From IMG/VR virus record IMGVR_UViG_3300024999_000029, positions 248,001 through 312,000 of that record: 64,000 nt of DNA; one strand, written 5' to 3'. This document shows positions 2,106-62,793 of this stretch, one piece after another (position 1 is the first letter of the stretch; every line of letters begins with the position of its first letter). A program made the position numbers and the translations under genes. The notes beneath the pieces were generated by a model. The model did no database searches, was not told the origin of the DNA, and was given only the letters and a program-made list of their open reading frames with translations.

Positions 2106-3909
2106 TATAAATAATTATCAAGGTGATTTTTATAGACATGCCAGATCATTTAATCCATCAATTCAGCCAAAGTTAATGGTGAATAAAAATAAAAGTGAAG
2201 AATGGGAAGATAACTTAATAGATTGGATTACTTTTTATCGTAGGAATATTCATAGATTTATTGAACATTATTTTCAAATTAAACTGCATTTATATCAAAT
2301 TATATGGATATATTTTATGTCCATATGTGATAGCTTTGTAACTATAGCTTCAAGAGCAAGTGCTAAATCTTGGCTTATAGCTTTATTGGCTTGTGCTAGA
2401 GCTGTGCTCTGGCCTTATTCAGAAATTGTAATTGTAGCAAAAACAAAAAAACAAGCAGGTATTATATTTGGGAAAATAGATATGCTAATGAGTGATTATC
2501 CTAATTTAAGAAGAGAAATTAGTGAGTTTAAAAATTCTCAAAATGATAGATACTGTAAATTTTATAATTCTTCTAAGATTGTCGCAGTAATATGTGACGA
2601 TGGTGGAAGAGGTGAACGTTCATGTTTTACAATTGGGGAAGAATTTCGTTTAATGGATAAAATTAAATATGATGAAATTGTAAGACCTTTTGCCGTAGCT
2701 AGACAAACACCATATACAAAAAATCCTAAATATTCACATTTAATAGAAGAACCAAAAGAAATATTAATTACATCTGCATACTATAAAAGCCTTTGGTGGT
2801 ATGGAGAAATGGAAGAAAATATTAAACTTATGCTCAAAGGTGAAAAAGCGGGGGTAATATATTTTGATTTTCCAGTAGCTATAAAACATGGTATAAAAAC
2901 TAAAAAAGTTATAGCTAAAGATAAACAAAAAATGGGTAGTATTGAGTTTCAACAAGAATATGAAAACATTCCTTTTGGTGAAAATGGTGACGCATTTTTT
3001 AAACTAGAAATGCTTTCTAAAAATAGAAATATAAAAAAAGTTTTTTATCCATTAAATAAAGATATGTTTGATAAAAAACGAAATCCATATAATATAAAAC
3101 GTGTAGATGGTGAAATTAGAATAGTTTCAGTTGATGCAAGTTCAAGAAAAGGCGAGGCAAATGATAATACAATCATTACATGTATCCGAGGATTACCTAC
3201 AGCTAAGGGATATGTAAGAGAATATGTTTATATGGAGTCTGAGCAAGGAGAACATACTGGCAAACAAGCATTGCGAATCAAACAAATTTATCATGATTTT
3301 GAAGCAGATTACATTGTACTTGACCTTCAAAATGTAGGAATTGCAATATTCGAGAGACTTGCGGTAGTTACTAAAGATGATGAGCGAGGTATCGAATATG
3401 ATGCTTTAACTGTTTATGAGCATAAATCTCTTGATAAAAAATTAATTAATGAATTAAAAGAAAAAACATTGGCTACGAAAGCAAAACCAGCAATATATCC
3501 TATTTTAGCATCGGCAAAATTAAATAGTGATATTGCGGTAAATTTTAGAGATTGTTTAAAAACAAAAATGATATCGATACCTGTTGATAATATTGATGGT
3601 GAAGAATTTTTATTAAAAACTAATAACGATTTTAAAGAAACAAATGACCTTGTTTTAAGAATGTGGTTTCTTGAACCTTATATGCAATTTTCGTTAATGG
3701 TTAATGAAACCATTAATTTAAGTTTTAGTGTTGTAAGTGGAAATATAAAATTAGAAGAACAAAGTGGAGAAATGAAAGACAGATATACTTCATGTTCATA
3801 TGGAAATTATTTTATTTCATTACTTGAACAAAAATTATTAAAAGTTGAAGATGATGAAGATTTATCTAAAATTCCACCATGTGTATCAAATTTAAATATT
3901 AAATTATAA
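2098..3909 (+). CDS. terL: Terminase large subunit
   Basis: Walker A-like SRASAKS, Walker B-like IGEEF, C-terminal RNase H-like nuclease (IRIVSVDAS, IVLDLQNVG, KDRYTS). Confidence 0.9.
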   Translation: MSSINNYQGDFYRHARSFNPSIQPKLMVNKNKSEEWEDNLIDWITFYRRNIHRFIEHYFQIKLHLYQIIWIYFMSICDSFVTIASRASAKSWLIALLACARAVLWPYSEIVIVAKTKKQAGIIFGKIDMLMSDYPNLRREISEFKNSQNDRYCKFYNSSKIVAVICDDGGRGERSCFTIGEEFRLMDKIKYDEIVRPFAVARQTPYTKNPKYSHLIEEPKEILITSAYYKSLWWYGEMEENIKLMLKGEKAGVIYFDFPVAIKHGIKTKKVIAKDKQKMGSIEFQQEYENIPFGENGDAFFKLEMLSKNRNIKKVFYPLNKDMFDKKRNPYNIKRVDGEIRIVSVDASSRKGEANDNTIITCIRGLPTAKGYVREYVYMESEQGEHTGKQALRIKQIYHDFEADYIVLDLQNVGIAIFERLAVVTKDDERGIEYDALTVYEHKSLDKKLINELKEKTLATKAKPAIYPILASAKLNSDIAVNFRDCLKTKMISIPVDNIDGEEFLLKTNNDFKETNDLVLRMWFLEPYMQFSLMVNETINLSFSVVSGNIKLEEQSGEMKDRYTSCSYGNYFISLLEQKLLKVEDDEDLSKIPPCVSNLNIKL

Positions 3910-56484: not shown

Positions 56485-56521
56485 TTATTGTGTTACAATT
56501 AGAGCATTTTTTTCAACATAC

Positions 56522-56549
56522 TTGACATATAACCATGCTATGGTATAAT
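56522..56549 (+). promoter_or_regulatory. SigA promoter of the repeat-RNA/PBECR4 locus
   Basis: TTGACA-16 bp-TATAAT with TGn; core identical to the promoter at 62013. Confidence 0.85.
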
Positions 56550-56595
56550 TAAATTAAGGTAGAATAAAATATCTTATGTAGTTTATATAATATCT

Positions 56596-56684
56596 GTCGG
56601 GATGGAGACGAAAAACTCATTCTCATTGGTCGGGATGAAGACCTAAAACTCATTCCCATTGCAGAGTGAACTGCTAAAAATCAG
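56596..56684 (+). ncRNA. Candidate antitoxin RNA: two 33-nt tandem repeats plus a diverged partial third unit
   Basis: 56596-56628 and 56629-56661 are 29/33 identical; each forms stem, purine loop, stem, A-tract and loop-complementary tail; unit 3 has a covarying stem (GCAG/CTGC). Confidence 0.7.
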
Positions 56685-56685
56685 T

Positions 56686-56710
56686 AAAAGATGGCTTAGG
56701 TCATCTTTTT
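56686..56710 (+). terminator. Terminator between the repeats and the nuclease gene
   Basis: AAAAGATGGC/GTCATCTTTT stem, TTAG loop, T run, directly before the AGGAG SD. Confidence 0.85.
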
Positions 56711-56730
56711 ACTTTTAATAGGAGATACAT

Positions 56731-57447
56731 ATGACAGAAGAAAAAAGTTTTAAAAAACGTGTAAAAGATGAAATTATAAATGGTGCAAAGATTTATAAGG
56801 AAAATTTTGTGGATTATGAATATCTTATATGTTCAGAAGCTTTTACTGCTAAAGAATTTTATACTATTGACGCAAAAGAAGATAATTATCAACATTTAAC
56901 TGGAGTTAATTCCTTAATTGCATCAAAAGATTTTTTTAACAAGTCATATGATAAAACTCTTCAAGAATCTGATTTTGATTTTAATAAGCGTGGGCAAAGT
57001 GAAAAATCAGTAAAAGGTTCTGTAAGAAGAAAAATTAGTGTTTTGCCTAATATTATACATATTTTTGAGAATGGTACATTAGTAGAAGAAAATCTTATAA
57101 AAAATCAAATTAAATGTTCTTTTGCAACCACCGATAAGAAATGTACATTAGGCTTTATTGACTTGACAAAATCAAGACCTATGTCTTTACTTAAAGGTGA
57201 CGAGATTGACAATACAAAAGCTAAAAACATTGACTTGCTTTTAAGGAAGCATATATCCAAAGATAAATTTAATGAAATTATAATTGGTGATTTTGTCGCA
57301 TTGCAAAAATATAGAGAAAACATAGAAGCGTTTTTAGATGAAAAAATTATAACGGAACTAGATAAAATGAAAGTACTCTTAGTCAAACAGGAATTACAAG
57401 AAGCTCAAGAGCAAGTTGCTTCGGGCGAATATGTAAGACCTCTCTGA
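56731..57447 (+). CDS. PBECR4-like (BECR-fold) predicted RNase
   Basis: A..Y...F....Y, N(F/Y).HLTG, V..K...L, LGF.....P.SLL motif order, as in PBECR4 proteins; recognised by eye. Confidence 0.68.
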   Translation: MTEEKSFKKRVKDEIINGAKIYKENFVDYEYLICSEAFTAKEFYTIDAKEDNYQHLTGVNSLIASKDFFNKSYDKTLQESDFDFNKRGQSEKSVKGSVRRKISVLPNIIHIFENGTLVEENLIKNQIKCSFATTDKKCTLGFIDLTKSRPMSLLKGDEIDNTKAKNIDLLLRKHISKDKFNEIIIGDFVALQKYRENIEAFLDEKIITELDKMKVLLVKQELQEAQEQVASGEYVRPL

Positions 57448-57552
57448 GTGGAGTTAAAAATTTGTCAAATTTAAGTAAATTAAAAATATAAATAAATCAG
57501 CATGAAGAGAGGAAAACACCTCTCTTTTATTATATAAAAAAGAGGTGAAATA

Positions 57553-60435
57553 ATGAATTTTACATATGATCTTTTTAATCGCATTGAAGCAATCCAAATA
57601 ATTCTCTGTAAAAATAACTTAGAAAAAGTTGGTGTCTTAGGTTTAGCATACGATAAAAAAGCAATATTGAGGCTTACGGACTTCTCGGAAATTTCTTTTA
57701 CATATCCTCAAAAAGTTGATAATAAAACAACTCAATATTATAATGATATTAAAACTAAAAAAATAATTTATGTTCCAGAGTTAGGTTATTTTAGACTTGA
57801 AAAAGTAAAGATTGAATCGGATGGCATCAGGGAGGTAAAAAATTGTGTTGGTTATTCTATTCAGATAGAATTAAAAAATAAACAATTAGTTAATTTCTCA
57901 GGTACGTATAAACTATATGACAGTTTAAAACCCCAAGAAAGTTTGATGGGTATTCTTATAGATTATTTTCCAAATTGGAGTATTAATGAGGTTGATGAGA
58001 ATCTTTGGAACATCTATCGTACATATGACATTTCAGAGAAGGATATCTATTCATTTTTAATGGATGATTTAATGACCTCATTTAATTGCGTGGTACTATT
58101 TGATATTATGAATCGTAAAATAAGTGTCAAAGAATTAGGAAATGTATCTAAAGAAACTGATATATATATTAGTTTTGATAATCTTATTAAGTCAGCAGAA
58201 ATTGAAGAATTGTCGGATGAAATTTGCAGTTCACTGAGGGTGAGGGGTGGATCGGAAAGTACTGACATCAGGAGTGTAAACCCGAATGGAACTGACACTA
58301 TTTATAATATAAACTATTATAAAACACTTGAGTATATGAGCCAGAGTCTAATAGATGCTTTAAATGCATATGAAATAAAATATAATAGTAATAAGACTAC
58401 ATATTCAACAAAATTAACACAAATTAAAGATAAGAATACTATTTTAATAACCAAAAATGGAGAATTAGATACACTCAATACTCAGATGGATGTGCTTGTA
58501 GCAACAAAAATGGTTAAAATACAAGGCGGTTTATCATTAACTGAAATAAATTCTCAAATATCTTCAAAACAATCTGAGATAAATACAAAAAATAATGAGA
58601 TAACGGGAATAAAAAATGAGATTGCGGTATTGCAAAGCAATCTAAATGATATAGTAGTTCAATTAAAATTCAGTAATAATTTTACAGTAGATCAATTAAA
58701 AGAGTTGGACAATTTTTTAATTGAATCCACATATACCGACTCAACATTTATAGTTGTAGACAGTATGACGGAAGTGCAGAAGCAAGAGAAAATGCAAGAA
58801 TTATATGATTATGCTAGTACTATATTAACACGACTGTCTCAACCAAGATTTTCTTTTAGTATTTCTAGTGCAAACTTTGTTTTTCTAAAAGAGTATGAAA
58901 GTTTTATGAAACAATTAGAATTAGGGTGTTTAATTAAAACTGAATTAAGAGAAGATTATATAGTAACACCAATTTTACTTGAAATTGAGATTGATTTTGA
59001 ACAGGATGATAATTTTAATCTTCGTTTCGGGAATAGATATAAGCTGAGTGACAACACGTTTACTCTAGCCGATATAATGAGTCAAACTACACAAAGTTCA
59101 AGCACTATAAGTTTTGAAAAGTATACTTATAAAGATTGGTATAAAAACAGTAAAGATTCGGTTAGTACGTTCATCGAAAGTGCCTTAAATGCTTCCGTAA
59201 ACAATATCAAATCCTCCGATAACCAGGATATCTTAATAGATCAGCATGGCATGCGCTGTAGACAATTCGATACAAGTACTAATGCATTTAAACCTGAACA
59301 ACTTTGGATAGTCAATAACATGATCTCGATGTCTAATGATGGATTTTCTAACACAGGTAAGATTGCAATCGGTAAAATTATAGATGATCGTTACGGAGAA
59401 ATTTGGGGTATAGCCGCACCTCTATTAGCAGGAAAAATTCTTACGGGCAACAACCTTCGCATAGAGAATTCAAAAAATAGTTTTGTACTGGATGAAAATG
59501 GTTGTGTGCTTACAGATGCAAAATTCACTCTCCAAACATCTAATGGAAAAGGCAAAATTATTTTAGACCCCACATTAGGTATAAGAATACAAGGAAATAC
59601 AGGGGGTACTTTTGTAGATAAATTTTATGTAGACTCTTTGGGGAATGTGAAATTTTCAGGAGAATTGTCAGCTGCTACTGGAACTTTCAGTGGAACTGTT
59701 CAAGCAGGTAGTATTATATCAAGTACTATCACTGGAGGAACAATCTCTATCGGTTCTAATTTTAGTGTTAATTCTAGTGGAATAATTACAGCTACAGGAG
59801 CTAATATTTCTGGTAATATAACTGCGAATGCTTTAACTGCAAATGCCACTATACAATCTCCAATTGTTACTGGTGGAACAATAAAAACTTCAAGCAGTGG
59901 ACAAAGAATTGAATTAAGTTCCAACAAACTACAAGCATTTGATTCAAATGGCATATCAAGAATAAAATTTGAGCCAGTAACTACTTCTGAAGTAAATTAT
60001 TATGAATTACAATTTCAAGGACAAAGTGGTAGTCAACAAGGAAGTATATCTGGAACAGATAATCAACTTAATATTGTTGGTCATAATGCACTTGTCTTAA
60101 ATGGTGGTAATGATAAGGTGTATTTTACTTCAGATGTCGATTTTCAAGGTAATATTGCTTATATTAATACGATTGAACCAGATGTTGCATTAGCTATTAA
60201 TGGAATATTAGGACATACTGGTTCTAGAATAGGATTTTTTGGAGTAGATCCAGCTATACAACAAACAGCTTCATTATTAGGCGATAAATTTACAACTGAA
60301 ACAGCAGACCTTACTTACGGCAGTATTGAGGTTTCCATGTTGACTCATTTAAAATCTGACGTAGGAAATTTGTATAATAAAGTTAATGGTATATTGACTA
60401 AATTGGCAGAATATGGATTATTTGAATTAGAATAA
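57553..60435 (+). CDS. Tail-associated (Tal/endopeptidase-like) protein with beta-helical C-terminus
   Basis: SEISF..P, GYF, DI.SVNP.G, coiled coil, G.IA, G.F.G.(V/I).A repeats. Confidence 0.75.
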   Translation: MNFTYDLFNRIEAIQIILCKNNLEKVGVLGLAYDKKAILRLTDFSEISFTYPQKVDNKTTQYYNDIKTKKIIYVPELGYFRLEKVKIESDGIREVKNCVGYSIQIELKNKQLVNFSGTYKLYDSLKPQESLMGILIDYFPNWSINEVDENLWNIYRTYDISEKDIYSFLMDDLMTSFNCVVLFDIMNRKISVKELGNVSKETDIYISFDNLIKSAEIEELSDEICSSLRVRGGSESTDIRSVNPNGTDTIYNINYYKTLEYMSQSLIDALNAYEIKYNSNKTTYSTKLTQIKDKNTILITKNGELDTLNTQMDVLVATKMVKIQGGLSLTEINSQISSKQSEINTKNNEITGIKNEIAVLQSNLNDIVVQLKFSNNFTVDQLKELDNFLIESTYTDSTFIVVDSMTEVQKQEKMQELYDYASTILTRLSQPRFSFSISSANFVFLKEYESFMKQLELGCLIKTELREDYIVTPILLEIEIDFEQDDNFNLRFGNRYKLSDNTFTLADIMSQTTQSSSTISFEKYTYKDWYKNSKDSVSTFIESALNASVNNIKSSDNQDILIDQHGMRCRQFDTSTNAFKPEQLWIVNNMISMSNDGFSNTGKIAIGKIIDDRYGEIWGIAAPLLAGKILTGNNLRIENSKNSFVLDENGCVLTDAKFTLQTSNGKGKIILDPTLGIRIQGNTGGTFVDKFYVDSLGNVKFSGELSAATGTFSGTVQAGSIISSTITGGTISIGSNFSVNSSGIITATGANISGNITANALTANATIQSPIVTGGTIKTSSSGQRIELSSNKLQAFDSNGISRIKFEPVTTSEVNYYELQFQGQSGSQQGSISGTDNQLNIVGHNALVLNGGNDKVYFTSDVDFQGNIAYINTIEPDVALAINGILGHTGSRIGFFGVDPAIQQTASLLGDKFTTETADLTYGSIEVSMLTHLKSDVGNLYNKVNGILTKLAEYGLFELE
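59923..60152 (+). repeat. Direct repeat R1, copy A (230 bp)
   Basis: 199/230 identical to 60670-60899 with no indels; the first 67 and last 52 bp are perfectly identical. Confidence 0.95.
60373..60426 (+). repeat. Direct repeat R2, copy A (54 bp)
   Basis: Identical to 61089-61142. Confidence 0.95.
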
Positions 60436-60567: not shown

Positions 60568-61083
60568 ATGAAAAAATATAAACAATTTATCATAGGACTT
60601 TTACTTGGTTCATTATTATTTTCCACACTGGGAGTATTCGCTGCCAATGAATTAATAAATATTAAATTAAACAAACTACAAGCATTTGATTCAAATGGCA
60701 TATCAAGAATAAAATTTGAGCCAGTAACTACTTCTGGAGTAAATTACTATGAATTGCAGTTCTTTGGTCAAGGTGGGAATGAAGAAGGGATAATATCTGG
60801 AACTAATGGGAAACTTAATATTGTAGGTCGTAACAAACTTATTTTAGATGGTGGTAATGATAAGGTGTATTTTACTTCAGATGTCGATTTTCAAGGTAAG
60901 AACCTTAACTTTAGTAATGCAACGGTTAATGGATTAGACACAAATTCACATCTTCAAAAAAATCACAATCATGGAATTAAACCAGGAACAAAATTGGCTA
61001 TTACTGATGGACGAGGGAAAATTACAGGATATGTTGAATGGACTGAGGATGGAGGTTTTACTCATTCTCATAATATAGAATAA
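60568..61083 (+). CDS. Chimeric protein: signal peptide + copy of tail segment R1 + alternative His-rich tip
   Basis: N-terminal 34 aa paralogous to the 61923 minus-strand gene; middle homologous to the tail protein; ends HNHG...HSH. Confidence 0.75.
   Translation: MKKYKQFIIGLLLGSLLFSTLGVFAANELINIKLNKLQAFDSNGISRIKFEPVTTSGVNYYELQFFGQGGNEEGIISGTNGKLNIVGRNKLILDGGNDKVYFTSDVDFQGKNLNFSNATVNGLDTNSHLQKNHNHGIKPGTKLAITDGRGKITGYVEWTEDGGFTHSHNIE
60670..60899 (+). repeat. Direct repeat R1, copy B
   Basis: See copy A at 59923-60152. Confidence 0.95.
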
Positions 61084-61173: not shown

Positions 61174-61923
61174 CTATTTTAATAATGGTAAAACATTTTG
61201 AGTATAATAATTATATGGGATATAATAATGCAGAACATCTTCAGAATCAGTATATGTTGTAAATGGTATGTTATTTATTAATATATCTCCTTCTTGTATT
61301 TTATGAATAGCTTTGGCTTTAGAAGCCGACCTCATACTCTTATCTTTTTTTATATTTTCTAATTGTGTTAAATCTTTTTTATACAAACTCAAAGTATCAT
61401 TATCTTTATTTATTTTAGTGGTATATCCTACAGCAAGTTGTTTACCGCTATATTTATCAGGCTTAACATATTGGTTATATTTACTTCCTATATACCTAGT
61501 AGGCACATACTGACCGCCATCAATATACACTATGGGTAATCCATCAGAAGTTTTCTCAACATTTTTATTACGAGATTGTTCATAAGGATTAAGTGTTTTA
61601 ATATCTACTTTATCAATTTGTTCAGTTTCATAAACACCTTGAGTTACAGTAATATTCTCAGTTACACGAGCTATTTCTATATGACCGTTGGTTTGATTAA
61701 AAACAACTGGAATTTTTAAAACTTTACCAATATCTCCCAATTTCATATAGGTATAATCATTTATATTATAACCTTCAACGGCTACTTGCTCTCCATTAAA
61801 GAATATAGGATATTGATTTAGTTTGATAGTCAGTCCTAATTCATTAGTGGCAAATACTCCCAGAGTAGAAAATAATACTGAACCAATTAAAAATCCTACA
61901 GTAAATTGCTTATATTTTTTCAT
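61174..61923 (-). CDS. Secreted protein with copper-amine-oxidase-N/stalk-like domain
   Basis: GGAGG SD favours the ATG at 61923; Sec signal ending VFA; GYNINDYTYMKL.DI...L...V.F stalk motif. Confidence 0.75.
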   Translation of the reverse strand: MKKYKQFTVGFLIGSVLFSTLGVFATNELGLTIKLNQYPIFFNGEQVAVEGYNINDYTYMKLGDIGKVLKIPVVFNQTNGHIEIARVTENITVTQGVYETEQIDKVDIKTLNPYEQSRNKNVEKTSDGLPIVYIDGGQYVPTRYIGSKYNQYVKPDKYSGKQLAVGYTTKINKDNDTLSLYKKDLTQLENIKKDKSMRSASKAKAIHKIQEGDILINNIPFTTYTDSEDVLHYYIPYNYYTQNVLPLLK

Positions 61924-61994: not shown

Positions 61995-62012
61995 TATTTT
62001 TGTCGTTAAGAC

Positions 62013-62040
62013 TTGACATGGTATTATGCTATGGTATAAT
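62013..62040 (+). promoter_or_regulatory. SigA promoter of the cptIN-type locus
   Basis: TTGACA-16 bp-TATAAT with TGn. Confidence 0.85.
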
Positions 62041-62104
62041 TAAATTAAGGACAGAATAAAATAACTTGTAATAGGAAACCCCTTGCCTGATAGTAGGGAT
62101 CTGA

Positions 62105-62225
62105 ACAAACACGCTTCACAATGTGCGGCAAAGAAACATTGTTAATACAAAAGTGCTTCACAATGTGCATTAAATTACATTGTTGATACAAACACGCTTC
62201 ACAATGTGCGGCAAAGAAACATTGT
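62105..62225 (+). ncRNA. cptI: Type III antitoxin RNA (CptI-like), about 2.9 repeats of 41-42 nt
   Basis: Units at 62105, 62147 and 62188; loop ACAATGT pairs perfectly with downstream ACATTGT in all three; stem CGC/GCG becomes TGC/GCA in unit 2. Confidence 0.85.
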
Positions 62226-62252
62226 AAGAAAGCCTTTTATGGGCTTTCTTTT
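62226..62252 (+). terminator. Terminator between cptI and cptN
   Basis: AAGAAAGCC/GGCTTTCTT stem plus T run. Confidence 0.85.
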
Positions 62253-62265
62253 ATATGAGGTACAA

Positions 62266-62793
62266 ATGAAAAAGAATGCCATATATTTTGGAAATAAAGA
62301 CATATATCAAAAAATTAGAAATGCTGGTGGAGTATGGAATGATTCTAAAGATAGACCTATTGTATGCTTGCTAGAATCAACAGAAACAATAGGCTTGTAT
62401 TGGGCTATTCCAGTGGGGAATTGGGAGCATCGAGATCAGACAGCTAAAAATAGAATTGAGAAATATGTGTCTTACCCAAAATCAGATTTAAGGTCGTGTT
62501 ACTATCATGTCGGCAAGACTAATGAAAAATCAATTTTCTTTATAAGTGATGTTATCCCTATAGCTAAAAAATACATAGATAGAGAATATAAAGGGTTTGA
62601 CAAAAAGTTGTATGTAATTAAAAATAAAAAACTCATACAATCTTTAGAAGAAAAATTAACAAGGATTTTAGCTTTTGAAGCTACAAATAATAATTATTTT
62701 AGACAACGTATTACTGATGTTAAACATGTGTTGATTGAAGAATTAGAACTAGAAAATACATTCGGAAAAGTTGCACCAATCAAAGAGGAATAA
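62266..62793 (+). CDS. cptN: Type III TA toxin, CptN family endoribonuclease
   Basis: RP.......G.YW.IP.. and S.F.I.D..PI..KYI.REY match CptN motifs; GAGG SD favours 62266 over the GTG called inside the repeats. Confidence 0.85.
   Translation: MKKNAIYFGNKDIYQKIRNAGGVWNDSKDRPIVCLLESTETIGLYWAIPVGNWEHRDQTAKNRIEKYVSYPKSDLRSCYYHVGKTNEKSIFFISDVIPIAKKYIDREYKGFDKKLYVIKNKKLIQSLEEKLTRILAFEATNNNYFRQRITDVKHVLIEELELENTFGKVAPIKEE

Follow-up and report, generated by a model that had tools for sequence, protein, structure and literature searches.

In the three type III toxin-antitoxin families, ToxIN, CptIN and TenpIN, a single promoter precedes an RNA of tandem pseudoknot repeats, an intrinsic terminator and the gene of a metal-independent endoRNase. 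The number of families still stood at three in an October 2026 paper (PLoS Pathog.), which assigns their toxins to one conserved fold and presents tenpI as a pair of H-type pseudoknot repeats, not identical to each other, within a 2:2 complex (PMC13682666). Two type III-like pairs with HEPN toxins have also been reported, namely, AbiF/RCd22 of Clostridioides difficile phi027, where the RNA, consisting of two ~36-nt abiF RNA motifs and a terminator before the toxin gene, works in cis as well as in trans (bioRxiv 10.1101/2025.04.15.648962), and the lactococcal AbiV/abiV2 (bioRxiv 10.1101/2024.05.05.592566). The abiF RNA motif (RF03085) was catalogued in Rfam upstream of abiF genes before its role as the AbiF antitoxin was demonstrated (bioRxiv 10.1101/2025.04.15.648962). 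Here we describe a locus that probably represents a further type III-like family, in which repeated pseudoknots precede a gene of the PBECR4 family. It was found in a 64,000-nucleotide stretch (hereafter, the window), positions 248,001 to 312,000 of the 349,050-bp viral contig IMGVR_UViG_3300024999_000029 (Ga0209728_1000004).

Given the HEPN toxins of AbiF/RCd22 and AbiV, the premise of an earlier note on this DNA, that every type III toxin is ToxN-like, no longer holds. PBECR domains are described as remodelled BECR scaffolds and predicted to be metal-independent endoRNases of the BECR fold, in which a helix bears the catalytic His and a Thr/Ser is located C-terminally (Iyer et al. 2017, PMC5512222). 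Those in phage polyvalent proteins have been proposed to act as injected anti-host or anti-CRISPR effectors, and solo phage versions have been noted (PMC5512222). The protein described here shares with the polyvalent proteins the Pfam family PBECR4 and the predicted BECR-fold RNase, and differs in having an RNA next to its gene, whereas no immunity factor or RNA partner was described there. No publication linking PBECR4 to an RNA was found in the searchable library, and the PBECR4 family is absent from a 2026 preprint on a genome language model in which type III systems are mentioned.

The cassette consists of the following elements (positions in the window, plus strand throughout):

56520-56559, plus strand: 40-nt promoter cassette that includes the promoter; a second copy lies at 62011-62050, at a CptIN-like locus
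56522-56549, plus strand: promoter with TTGACA (-35), a 16-nt spacer and an extended -10, TG-TATAAT; 12 of 12 consensus positions match
56550-56594, plus strand: leader of ~45 nt between the promoter and RNA unit 1
56595-56627, plus strand: RNA unit 1, 33 nt, supported by the sequence, the repeat array, covariance model R2 and covariation; stem S1 TGTC/GACG (56595-98 with 56607-10), helix S2 GGGATGG (56599-605) with TCAT(T)CTC (56617-24; T56621 bulged), linker AAAAAC
56628-56660, plus strand: RNA unit 2, 33 nt, supported by the sequence, covariance model R2, covariation and an identical orphan copy in contig L110; stem S1 GGTC/GACC (56628-31 with 56640-43), helix S2 GGGATGA (56632-38) with TCAT(T)CCC (56650-57; T56654 bulged), linker TAAAAC
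56661-56685, plus strand: unit 3, a degenerate hairpin unit with a GCAG/CTGC stem, 6-nt loop, A-tract TAAAAA and tail TCAGT, without an S2 helix
56686-56717, plus strand: intrinsic terminator in the gap between the RNA and the open reading frame (ORF); hairpin 56686-56709 with a 10-bp stem and TTAG loop, followed by a T-run
56720-56724, plus strand: ribosome-binding site AGGAG, 6 nt before the ATG
56731-57447, plus strand: PBECR4-family ORF of 238 aa, the candidate toxin
57504-57527, plus strand: terminator closing the cassette; the hairpin is bidirectional and has its minus-strand counterpart at 57547-57517

The hallmarks of type III loci that can be read from sequence are present, namely, a tandem-repeat RNA directly upstream of an ORF on the same strand, a single promoter, a terminator in between and, on comparative evidence, a pseudoknot fold. 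Tandem Repeats Finder (TRF) identifies the array with a period of 33 nt (2.0 copies, 87% matches, score 104, 56596-56661), and the single-unit covariance model R2 scores unit 1 at 24.1 bits and unit 2 at 54.2 bits. The loop and tail differ between the two units, and both differences are absorbed by G.U pairs, so that the pairing is kept. Only two arrays with a period longer than 30 nt exist in the 64 kb, each preceded by a copy of the 40-nt promoter cassette, for which the window has exactly two occurrences against an expectation of zero; a covariance-model scan of the window found no further pseudoknot units. The earlier note had read this anatomy from the letters alone, as a consensus promoter, 33-nt tandem repeats each folding into a GTC/GAC-type stem, a loop, an A-tract and a tail able to pair with the loop (pairing being retained through G.U where loop and tail differ), a third unit with the stem swapped to GCAG/CTGC and, finally, a terminator, a Shine-Dalgarno sequence and a nuclease gene, and our examination bears out each of these elements.

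The assignment of the ORF to PBECR4 in the same note was upheld by the profile search, in which Pfam PF18813 aligned to residues 15-185 (model positions 2-184 of 188) with 54.2 bits, against a gathering cut-off of 27 (E 3.2e-14). The 267 homologs retrieved from a database clustered at 90% carry the same precomputed Pfam match; those with names are “PBECR4 domain-containing proteins” from Clostridia, including Clostridium perfringens, Vallitalea, Sedimentibacter, Lachnospiraceae and Oscillospiraceae, and a profile search of all 50%-cluster representatives yielded 1029 proteins at E <= 0.001. The exact protein is recorded on 15 contigs, as noted for the window and the loci L004 and L008. Other collections returned little: two unnamed viral proteins in BFVD, only a family of unknown function in PHROGs, a single match (a Clostridium estertheticum megaplasmid) in the plasmid collection, and none among isolated phage genomes in either nucleotide or protein searches. 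The residues that are invariant in alignment A1 include N52, H55, E91, R99, K101, T139 and R172; given the catalytic His and C-terminal Thr/Ser predicted for PBECR domains, the invariance of H55 and T139 is counted as support. The AlphaFold2 model of the ORF product is of high quality by its own scores (predicted local distance difference test, 93; predicted template modeling score, 0.84). By family assignment, the protein is predicted to adopt the BECR fold and to be a metal-independent RNase; it is the candidate toxin.

The protein is unrelated to ToxN, CptN, TenpN and AbiF, as follows from a series of null comparisons. In Pfam scans of the ORF, neither ToxN_toxin (PF13958) nor, at E values up to 1, Abi_2 (PF07751) was detected; the NCBIfam scan produced no match to the CptIN model NF047359; single-protein and profile searches found no sequence relatives in the PDB; and hhalign comparison of the ORF profile with the CptN homolog encoded in the window gave a probability of 0.5%. 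The Foldseek search considered below likewise gave no relation, the ToxN/CptN entries of the PDB included. Membership in ToxN, TenpN or AbiF families had been named beforehand among the findings that would speak against a new family, and none of these comparisons revealed it.

The association of the RNA with the gene extends far beyond the window. We collected 87 loci, mostly from Clostridia, in genomes, viral contigs and metagenomes, with homologs showing 43-62% protein identity, and a covariance model of the 96-nt RNA (R1), itself built from the family that was then counted, matched 80 of the 86 homologous loci, always upstream and on the strand of the gene. The six misses have less than 40 nt of upstream DNA, at contig ends, so that the RNA is present in 80 of 80 loci with a readable upstream region, in agreement with the expectation of the earlier note that homologs would be preceded by such repeats. 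Because of the way R1 was built, independent support comes from the loci outside the model-building set, including distant members, and from direct reading of the sequences; R1 matches, outside that set, the chromosomal copies of C. perfringens and three defense-island copies. Unit 3 was found by pattern in 52 of 52 distinct homologous loci, and a terminator hairpin with a T-run separates it from the start codon in 51 of the 52, the exception being a mis-called start codon. Most loci contain two full units and a few contain one. Among 55 distinct upstream regions, TRF alone detected repeats in 8. The reason is that the differences between units 1 and 2 are concentrated in the loop and tail and compensate each other, as in the loop/tail pairs AACGG/CCGTT, AACAG/CTGTT, GATGA/TCATT, TATAG/CTATA and AGCGG/CCGCT found among the homologs, so that direct reading and a covariance model were required. 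In the distant members L210 and L211, the plan of the RNA is recognizable, if partly reduced and spelled in different letters: L210 has a CGTCG/CGACG stem, a CGTGG loop that pairs with CCACG, then the hairpin TTCAG/CTGAA and a terminator, and L211 has a degenerate unit and a terminator.

The gene contexts of two homologs were examined. One lies among Phd/ParE, GmrSD, SNF2, PAPS-reductase and SMC-type genes, that is, in a defense island, and the C. perfringens copy is located at the border of a prophage-like element, next to a large serine recombinase.

Apart from this linkage, we noted that the terminator stem (56686-56709 in the window) is conserved in sequence in most of the 87 loci, as GGATGRC...GTCATCC, and resembles S2 of unit 2 (GGGATGR/YCATTCCC). 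Covariation between this stem and S2 of unit 2, as a sign of an antiterminator, was sought and none was obvious; the stem fails to track S2 where unit 2 differs. The conserved stem could be a protein contact, an alternative pairing or a relic fourth unit.

Both helices of the pseudoknot are supported by compensatory changes, a check that the earlier note had called for. For alignment A2, of 38 sequences, we specified S1 and S2 of units 1 and 2 and the stem of unit 3. In this alignment, 94.5% of the cells are paired, compared with 33-48% when partners are slid by 1-3 columns, and double-sided changes occupy 96 cells, compared with 33 +/- 5 in shuffles, and are spread over 12 pairs; the loci include many close gut relatives, so these cell counts overstate the number of independent events, on which neither the controls with slid partners nor the tally of pair types depends. 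In each unit, 5 of the 7 S2 pairs covary. The outer S1 pair of unit 1 is AU in 13 sequences, GC in 9 and UA in 6, the three inner S1 pairs never vary, and in the stem of unit 3 a C-G pair is replaced by U-A in three sequences, each from a different lineage. When 58 distinct units were pooled, the paired share was 90.6%, as against 38-56% in controls. RNAalifold is unable to represent pseudoknots; independently, it reports S2 for unit 1 and S1 for unit 2, in agreement with both helices being real. Taken together, the alignments support an H-type pseudoknot in each of units 1 and 2. The RNA letters that do not vary (GUC-G, AGAC and AAA(C)) are candidates for protein contacts or tertiary interactions. 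For unit 3, an S2-equivalent pairing of the tail and an alternative CTG/CAG hairpin were considered and dropped, both being inconsistent across lineages.

Compared with ToxIN, CptIN and TenpIN, the locus has the same order of a promoter, a tandem-repeat RNA, an intrinsic terminator and an endoRNase gene (predicted in this case), with pseudoknot repeats that number 2 to 3 and are non-identical, as in tenpI. The metal-independent RNase chemistry, predicted for PBECR4, and the occurrence as morons in phages, prophages and defense islands are further points in common. It differs in that the candidate toxin is unrelated to theirs, the RNA matches none of their Rfam models, and its third unit is not a partial repeat but a bare hairpin. 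With AbiF/RCd22 and AbiV it has in common a type III-like RNA-protein pair in which the toxin is not ToxN-like, and with AbiF/RCd22 also two repeated motifs and a terminator, a prophage location and occurrence in Clostridia. The RNases of those systems, however, are HEPN proteins, and the RNA here is a pseudoknot of a different sequence from RCd22; the RF03085 abiF motif has no match in the window RNA at E values up to 10.

The closest catalogued RNA is GP20-b (Rfam RF03003), a motif from Weinberg et al. 2017 that is catalogued as cis-regulatory, upstream of GP20 genes of unknown function (discussed in PMC10690425). Its model aligns end to end with units 2 and 3 of the window RNA at 29.4 bits, under the gathering score of 36.2, and the scores of homologs are 28.4, 28.7 and 36.4 bits, the last of these (L083) just above the gathering score. 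The features in common are GGUC, a loop that pairs with a tail located downstream, UAAAA, a hairpin of 4 bp and CUAAAAA, whereas, as far as the model and its description go, no pseudoknot, PBECR4 or toxin-antitoxin link is recorded for GP20-b. An exact-pattern scan of viral contigs for the GP20-b consensus found none. Judged by its score, the window RNA is at the fringe of GP20-b and no clear member. The toxin is unrelated to those of the established families, but the RNA is not wholly new to databases, considering the sub-threshold to borderline match to GP20-b. In layout and logic, the system is type III, with a candidate toxin from an unrelated family and an RNA whose family is either new or hardly catalogued so far.

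We consider it probable that the cassette belongs to a new type III-like toxin-antitoxin family that pairs an RNA antitoxin with a BECR-family RNase toxin and is carried by the viral contig as a self-contained moron. The analysis itself establishes how the cassette is built, the covariation of the pseudoknots, the family of the protein, the strict linkage between the RNA and the gene throughout that family, and the defense and prophage contexts; toxicity, RNA-protein binding, processing and the trigger we infer. Under this model, a strong constitutive promoter would produce a short non-coding RNA with two non-identical 33-nt H-type pseudoknot units and a third, hairpin unit. The intrinsic terminator would stop most transcripts, keeping the RNA in excess, and read-through would yield the mRNA for the PBECR4 RNase, which would bind the pseudoknot units and be held inactive. 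Probably, the RNase would also excise the units by cutting the conserved single-stranded junction or the A-rich segments, as ToxN, CptN and TenpN do. If transcription ceased, as when an infecting phage shuts it down, the labile RNA would disappear, and the freed RNase would cut cellular and phage RNA, so that the infection is aborted or rivals are excluded.

A second type III-like cassette, 5 kb downstream of the PBECR4 cassette, uses the same 40-nt promoter cassette:

62011-62793: second type III-like cassette
62105-62225: repeats, 41 nt x 2.9, followed by a terminator
62266-62793: CptN homolog, 175 aa (PDB 4rmo, E 1.4e-6)

The 175-aa protein scores 50.7 bits with the NCBIfam CptIN model, under its 90-bit equivalog cut-off, and the 41-nt repeat RNA scores 93 bits with Rfam RF02920 (Fusobacteriales-1, typed Cis-reg) and is probably a CptI-type antitoxin. 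The CptIN companion that the earlier note had pointed out behind the same promoter encodes a genuine CptN homolog. The phage is very large and AT-rich and carries at least two cassettes of the RNA-antitoxin type. The PBECR4 cassette is flanked by an antirepressor-type gene on one side and by a gene for a 960-aa tail-like protein on the other. A 171-aa ORF (60568-61083) repeats ~75 residues from the C-terminal part of that 960-aa protein (57553-60435), in the segment NKLQAFDSNGISRIKFEPVTTS...DVDFQG, which looks like a duplicated or exchangeable tail-fiber tip module beside the CptIN-like cassette. The same 171-aa ORF has an N-terminal hydrophobic leader, MKKYKQF...LFSTLGVFA, in common with an ORF on the opposite strand (61174-61923, minus strand).

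A pattern scan of viral contigs, followed by covariance models, recovered the RNA unit without a PBECR4 gene in nine viral contigs; the contig L192 carries a pair of decayed loci:

L110 (IMGVR_UViG_3300025011_000018, 154 kb), 3023-3175: orphan RNA with a 32-nt leader, one unit and a terminator
L099, 12675-12767, minus strand: two units right before a small ORF
L198, 6344-6436, minus strand: two units right before a small ORF
L140, 3329-3408: one unit between SPOR-domain lysin genes
L197, 8427-8500, minus strand: one unit between SPOR-domain lysin genes
L141, 3348-3543: orphan unit
L146, 1285-1387: orphan unit
L186, 3509-3590: orphan unit
L187, 6207-6305: orphan unit
L192, 6764-7655: pair of decayed loci, the first with a complete RNA of the PBECR4 type, its terminator and then just ~20 codons of the gene
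L192, 7239-7350: second locus of the pair, with 35-nt x 3.2 repeats before a truncated 83-aa ORF that has a weak N-terminal match to ToxN_toxin (E 0.018)

The L110 unit is 100% identical over 38 nt to unit 2 of the window, and its leader is 90.6% identical to the leader of the CptI-type RNA in the window (62074-62105); the contig is in part akin to the window phage, with 75% identity between L110 4355-4820 and positions 672-1131 of the window. The neighbors of orphan units include a small YonK-like ORF, an HU-like gene, SPOR-domain lysins, a helix-turn-helix (HTH) gene and tRNAs. We found no GP20 family proteins among them and, by tblastn, no PBECR4 relatives in the orphan-bearing stretches, which span up to 15 kb. 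In L192, the truncated gene behind an intact RNA is suggestive of a toxic protein; a PemK/MazF-like gene lies further downstream in this contig. Calcineurin-like metallophosphoesterase genes are located just 3' of orphan units in L140 (4418-5620) and L141 (3989-4630), as identified by Pfam, and a probable third one, by sequence motifs only, in L110 (3369-4352). This adjacency could be a coincidence or a link to RNA-end repair.

Pectobacterium phage phiTE reportedly carries copies of antitoxin repeats without a toxin (pseudo-ToxI). At the sequence level, the orphan units of L110, L099, L198 and L192 look like such toxin-less repeat copies. We tentatively entertain, as one possibility among others, that the unit is a mobile antidote module in an arms race between phages or between phages and hosts, in which PBECR4 cassettes, borne by prophages, defense islands and the 349-kb phage, would serve as abortive-infection or exclusion weapons and toxin-less copies in other phages as decoy antitoxins disarming the RNase. 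L110, where the unit is that of window unit 2, L099 and L198, with two units each, and L192, with a full RNA and a deleted gene, may be such decoys. Alternatively, the toxin-less copies could be decay products or reflect another role of the unit. If they are decoys, the “cis-regulatory” GP20-b motif of Rfam would consist, in part, of decoys or antitoxins, and RNA-repeat antitoxins would have originated separately on no fewer than three RNase scaffolds (ToxN-like, HEPN and BECR).

Several observations weigh against the toxin-antitoxin model. A Foldseek search of the AlphaFold2 model against the PDB found no solved structure at E <= 0.001 (best E 0.46), so that the RNase assignment rests on the Pfam family and the prediction of its authors, and no PADLOC or NCBIfam model matches the PBECR4 protein. 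There are only two full units in the window, and only one in some relatives. The unit occurs beside unrelated genes in viral contigs and so could have a role independent of PBECR4, and the nearest Rfam family, GP20-b, is typed Cis-reg. This last point, along with the position of the RNA in the 5' untranslated region directly ahead of a terminator, would also fit an RNA that acts only in cis, as a 5' leader forming a protein-responsive attenuator. In that case, PBECR4 or another factor would bind the pseudoknots and determine how many transcripts extend past the terminator, and the protein would be neither growth-inhibiting nor neutralized by the RNA in trans; the unusually conserved terminator stem GGATGRC/GTCATCC, being like S2 of unit 2, would make alternative pairings possible. 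We find such an attenuator unlikely because toxin-less copies, of which one has its own terminator (L110) and another has lost the gene (L192), would be pointless if the RNA were a leader only, and because the tandem non-identical units, the defense-island context and the co-location with CptN- and ToxN-type loci fit a toxin-antitoxin pair. Furthermore, attenuation in cis and antitoxin activity in trans coexist in AbiF/RCd22, so that the attenuator is, in part, contained in the toxin-antitoxin model.

The presence of units ahead of unrelated viral genes (the YonK-like ORF, SPOR-domain lysins, the HTH gene and tRNAs) raises another interpretation, namely, that PBECR4 acts in phage RNA processing as an endonuclease comparable to T4 RegB and that the units, placed ahead of several phage genes including its own, are recognition sites that time or stabilize transcripts, with no toxin-antitoxin relationship involved. 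RegB-like targeting of mRNA by PBECR domains has been raised by Iyer et al. 2017 (PMC5512222). However, the window holds no further unit, the orphan-bearing stretches, of 15 kb at most, encode no PBECR4 relative, and the family is mostly chromosomal, in defense islands or at prophage edges, where a role in the timing of phage transcripts is unlikely; accordingly, we regard this interpretation as improbable. Finally, with two copies only, 87% alike, the repeat might be taken for chance or for a decaying duplication devoid of its own function. We count this as refuted, given that the RNA is kept, with compensatory changes, in over 50 distinct loci despite protein identities of only 43-62%; that the repeats of the cassette are beyond chance also follows from the pairing of the only two arrays with the same promoter, the conservation of the RNA upstream of homologs and the score of the PBECR4 match.

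If the toxin-antitoxin model holds, an RNase of the BECR family held in check by an RNA of pseudoknot repeats would imply that the control logic of type III systems is general and has been reached on unrelated RNase scaffolds. It would provide the first immunity factor for solo PBECR4 proteins, together with a likely role in defense, in a family that spans 1029 cluster representatives, with named relatives in Clostridia and many related loci coming from human-gut metagenomes. A function would also be suggested for the borderline Rfam motif GP20-b, and structural work would gain a small RNA-protein pair (33 nt with about 210 aa). The toxin-less phage copies offer a testable case of RNA-based counter-defense.

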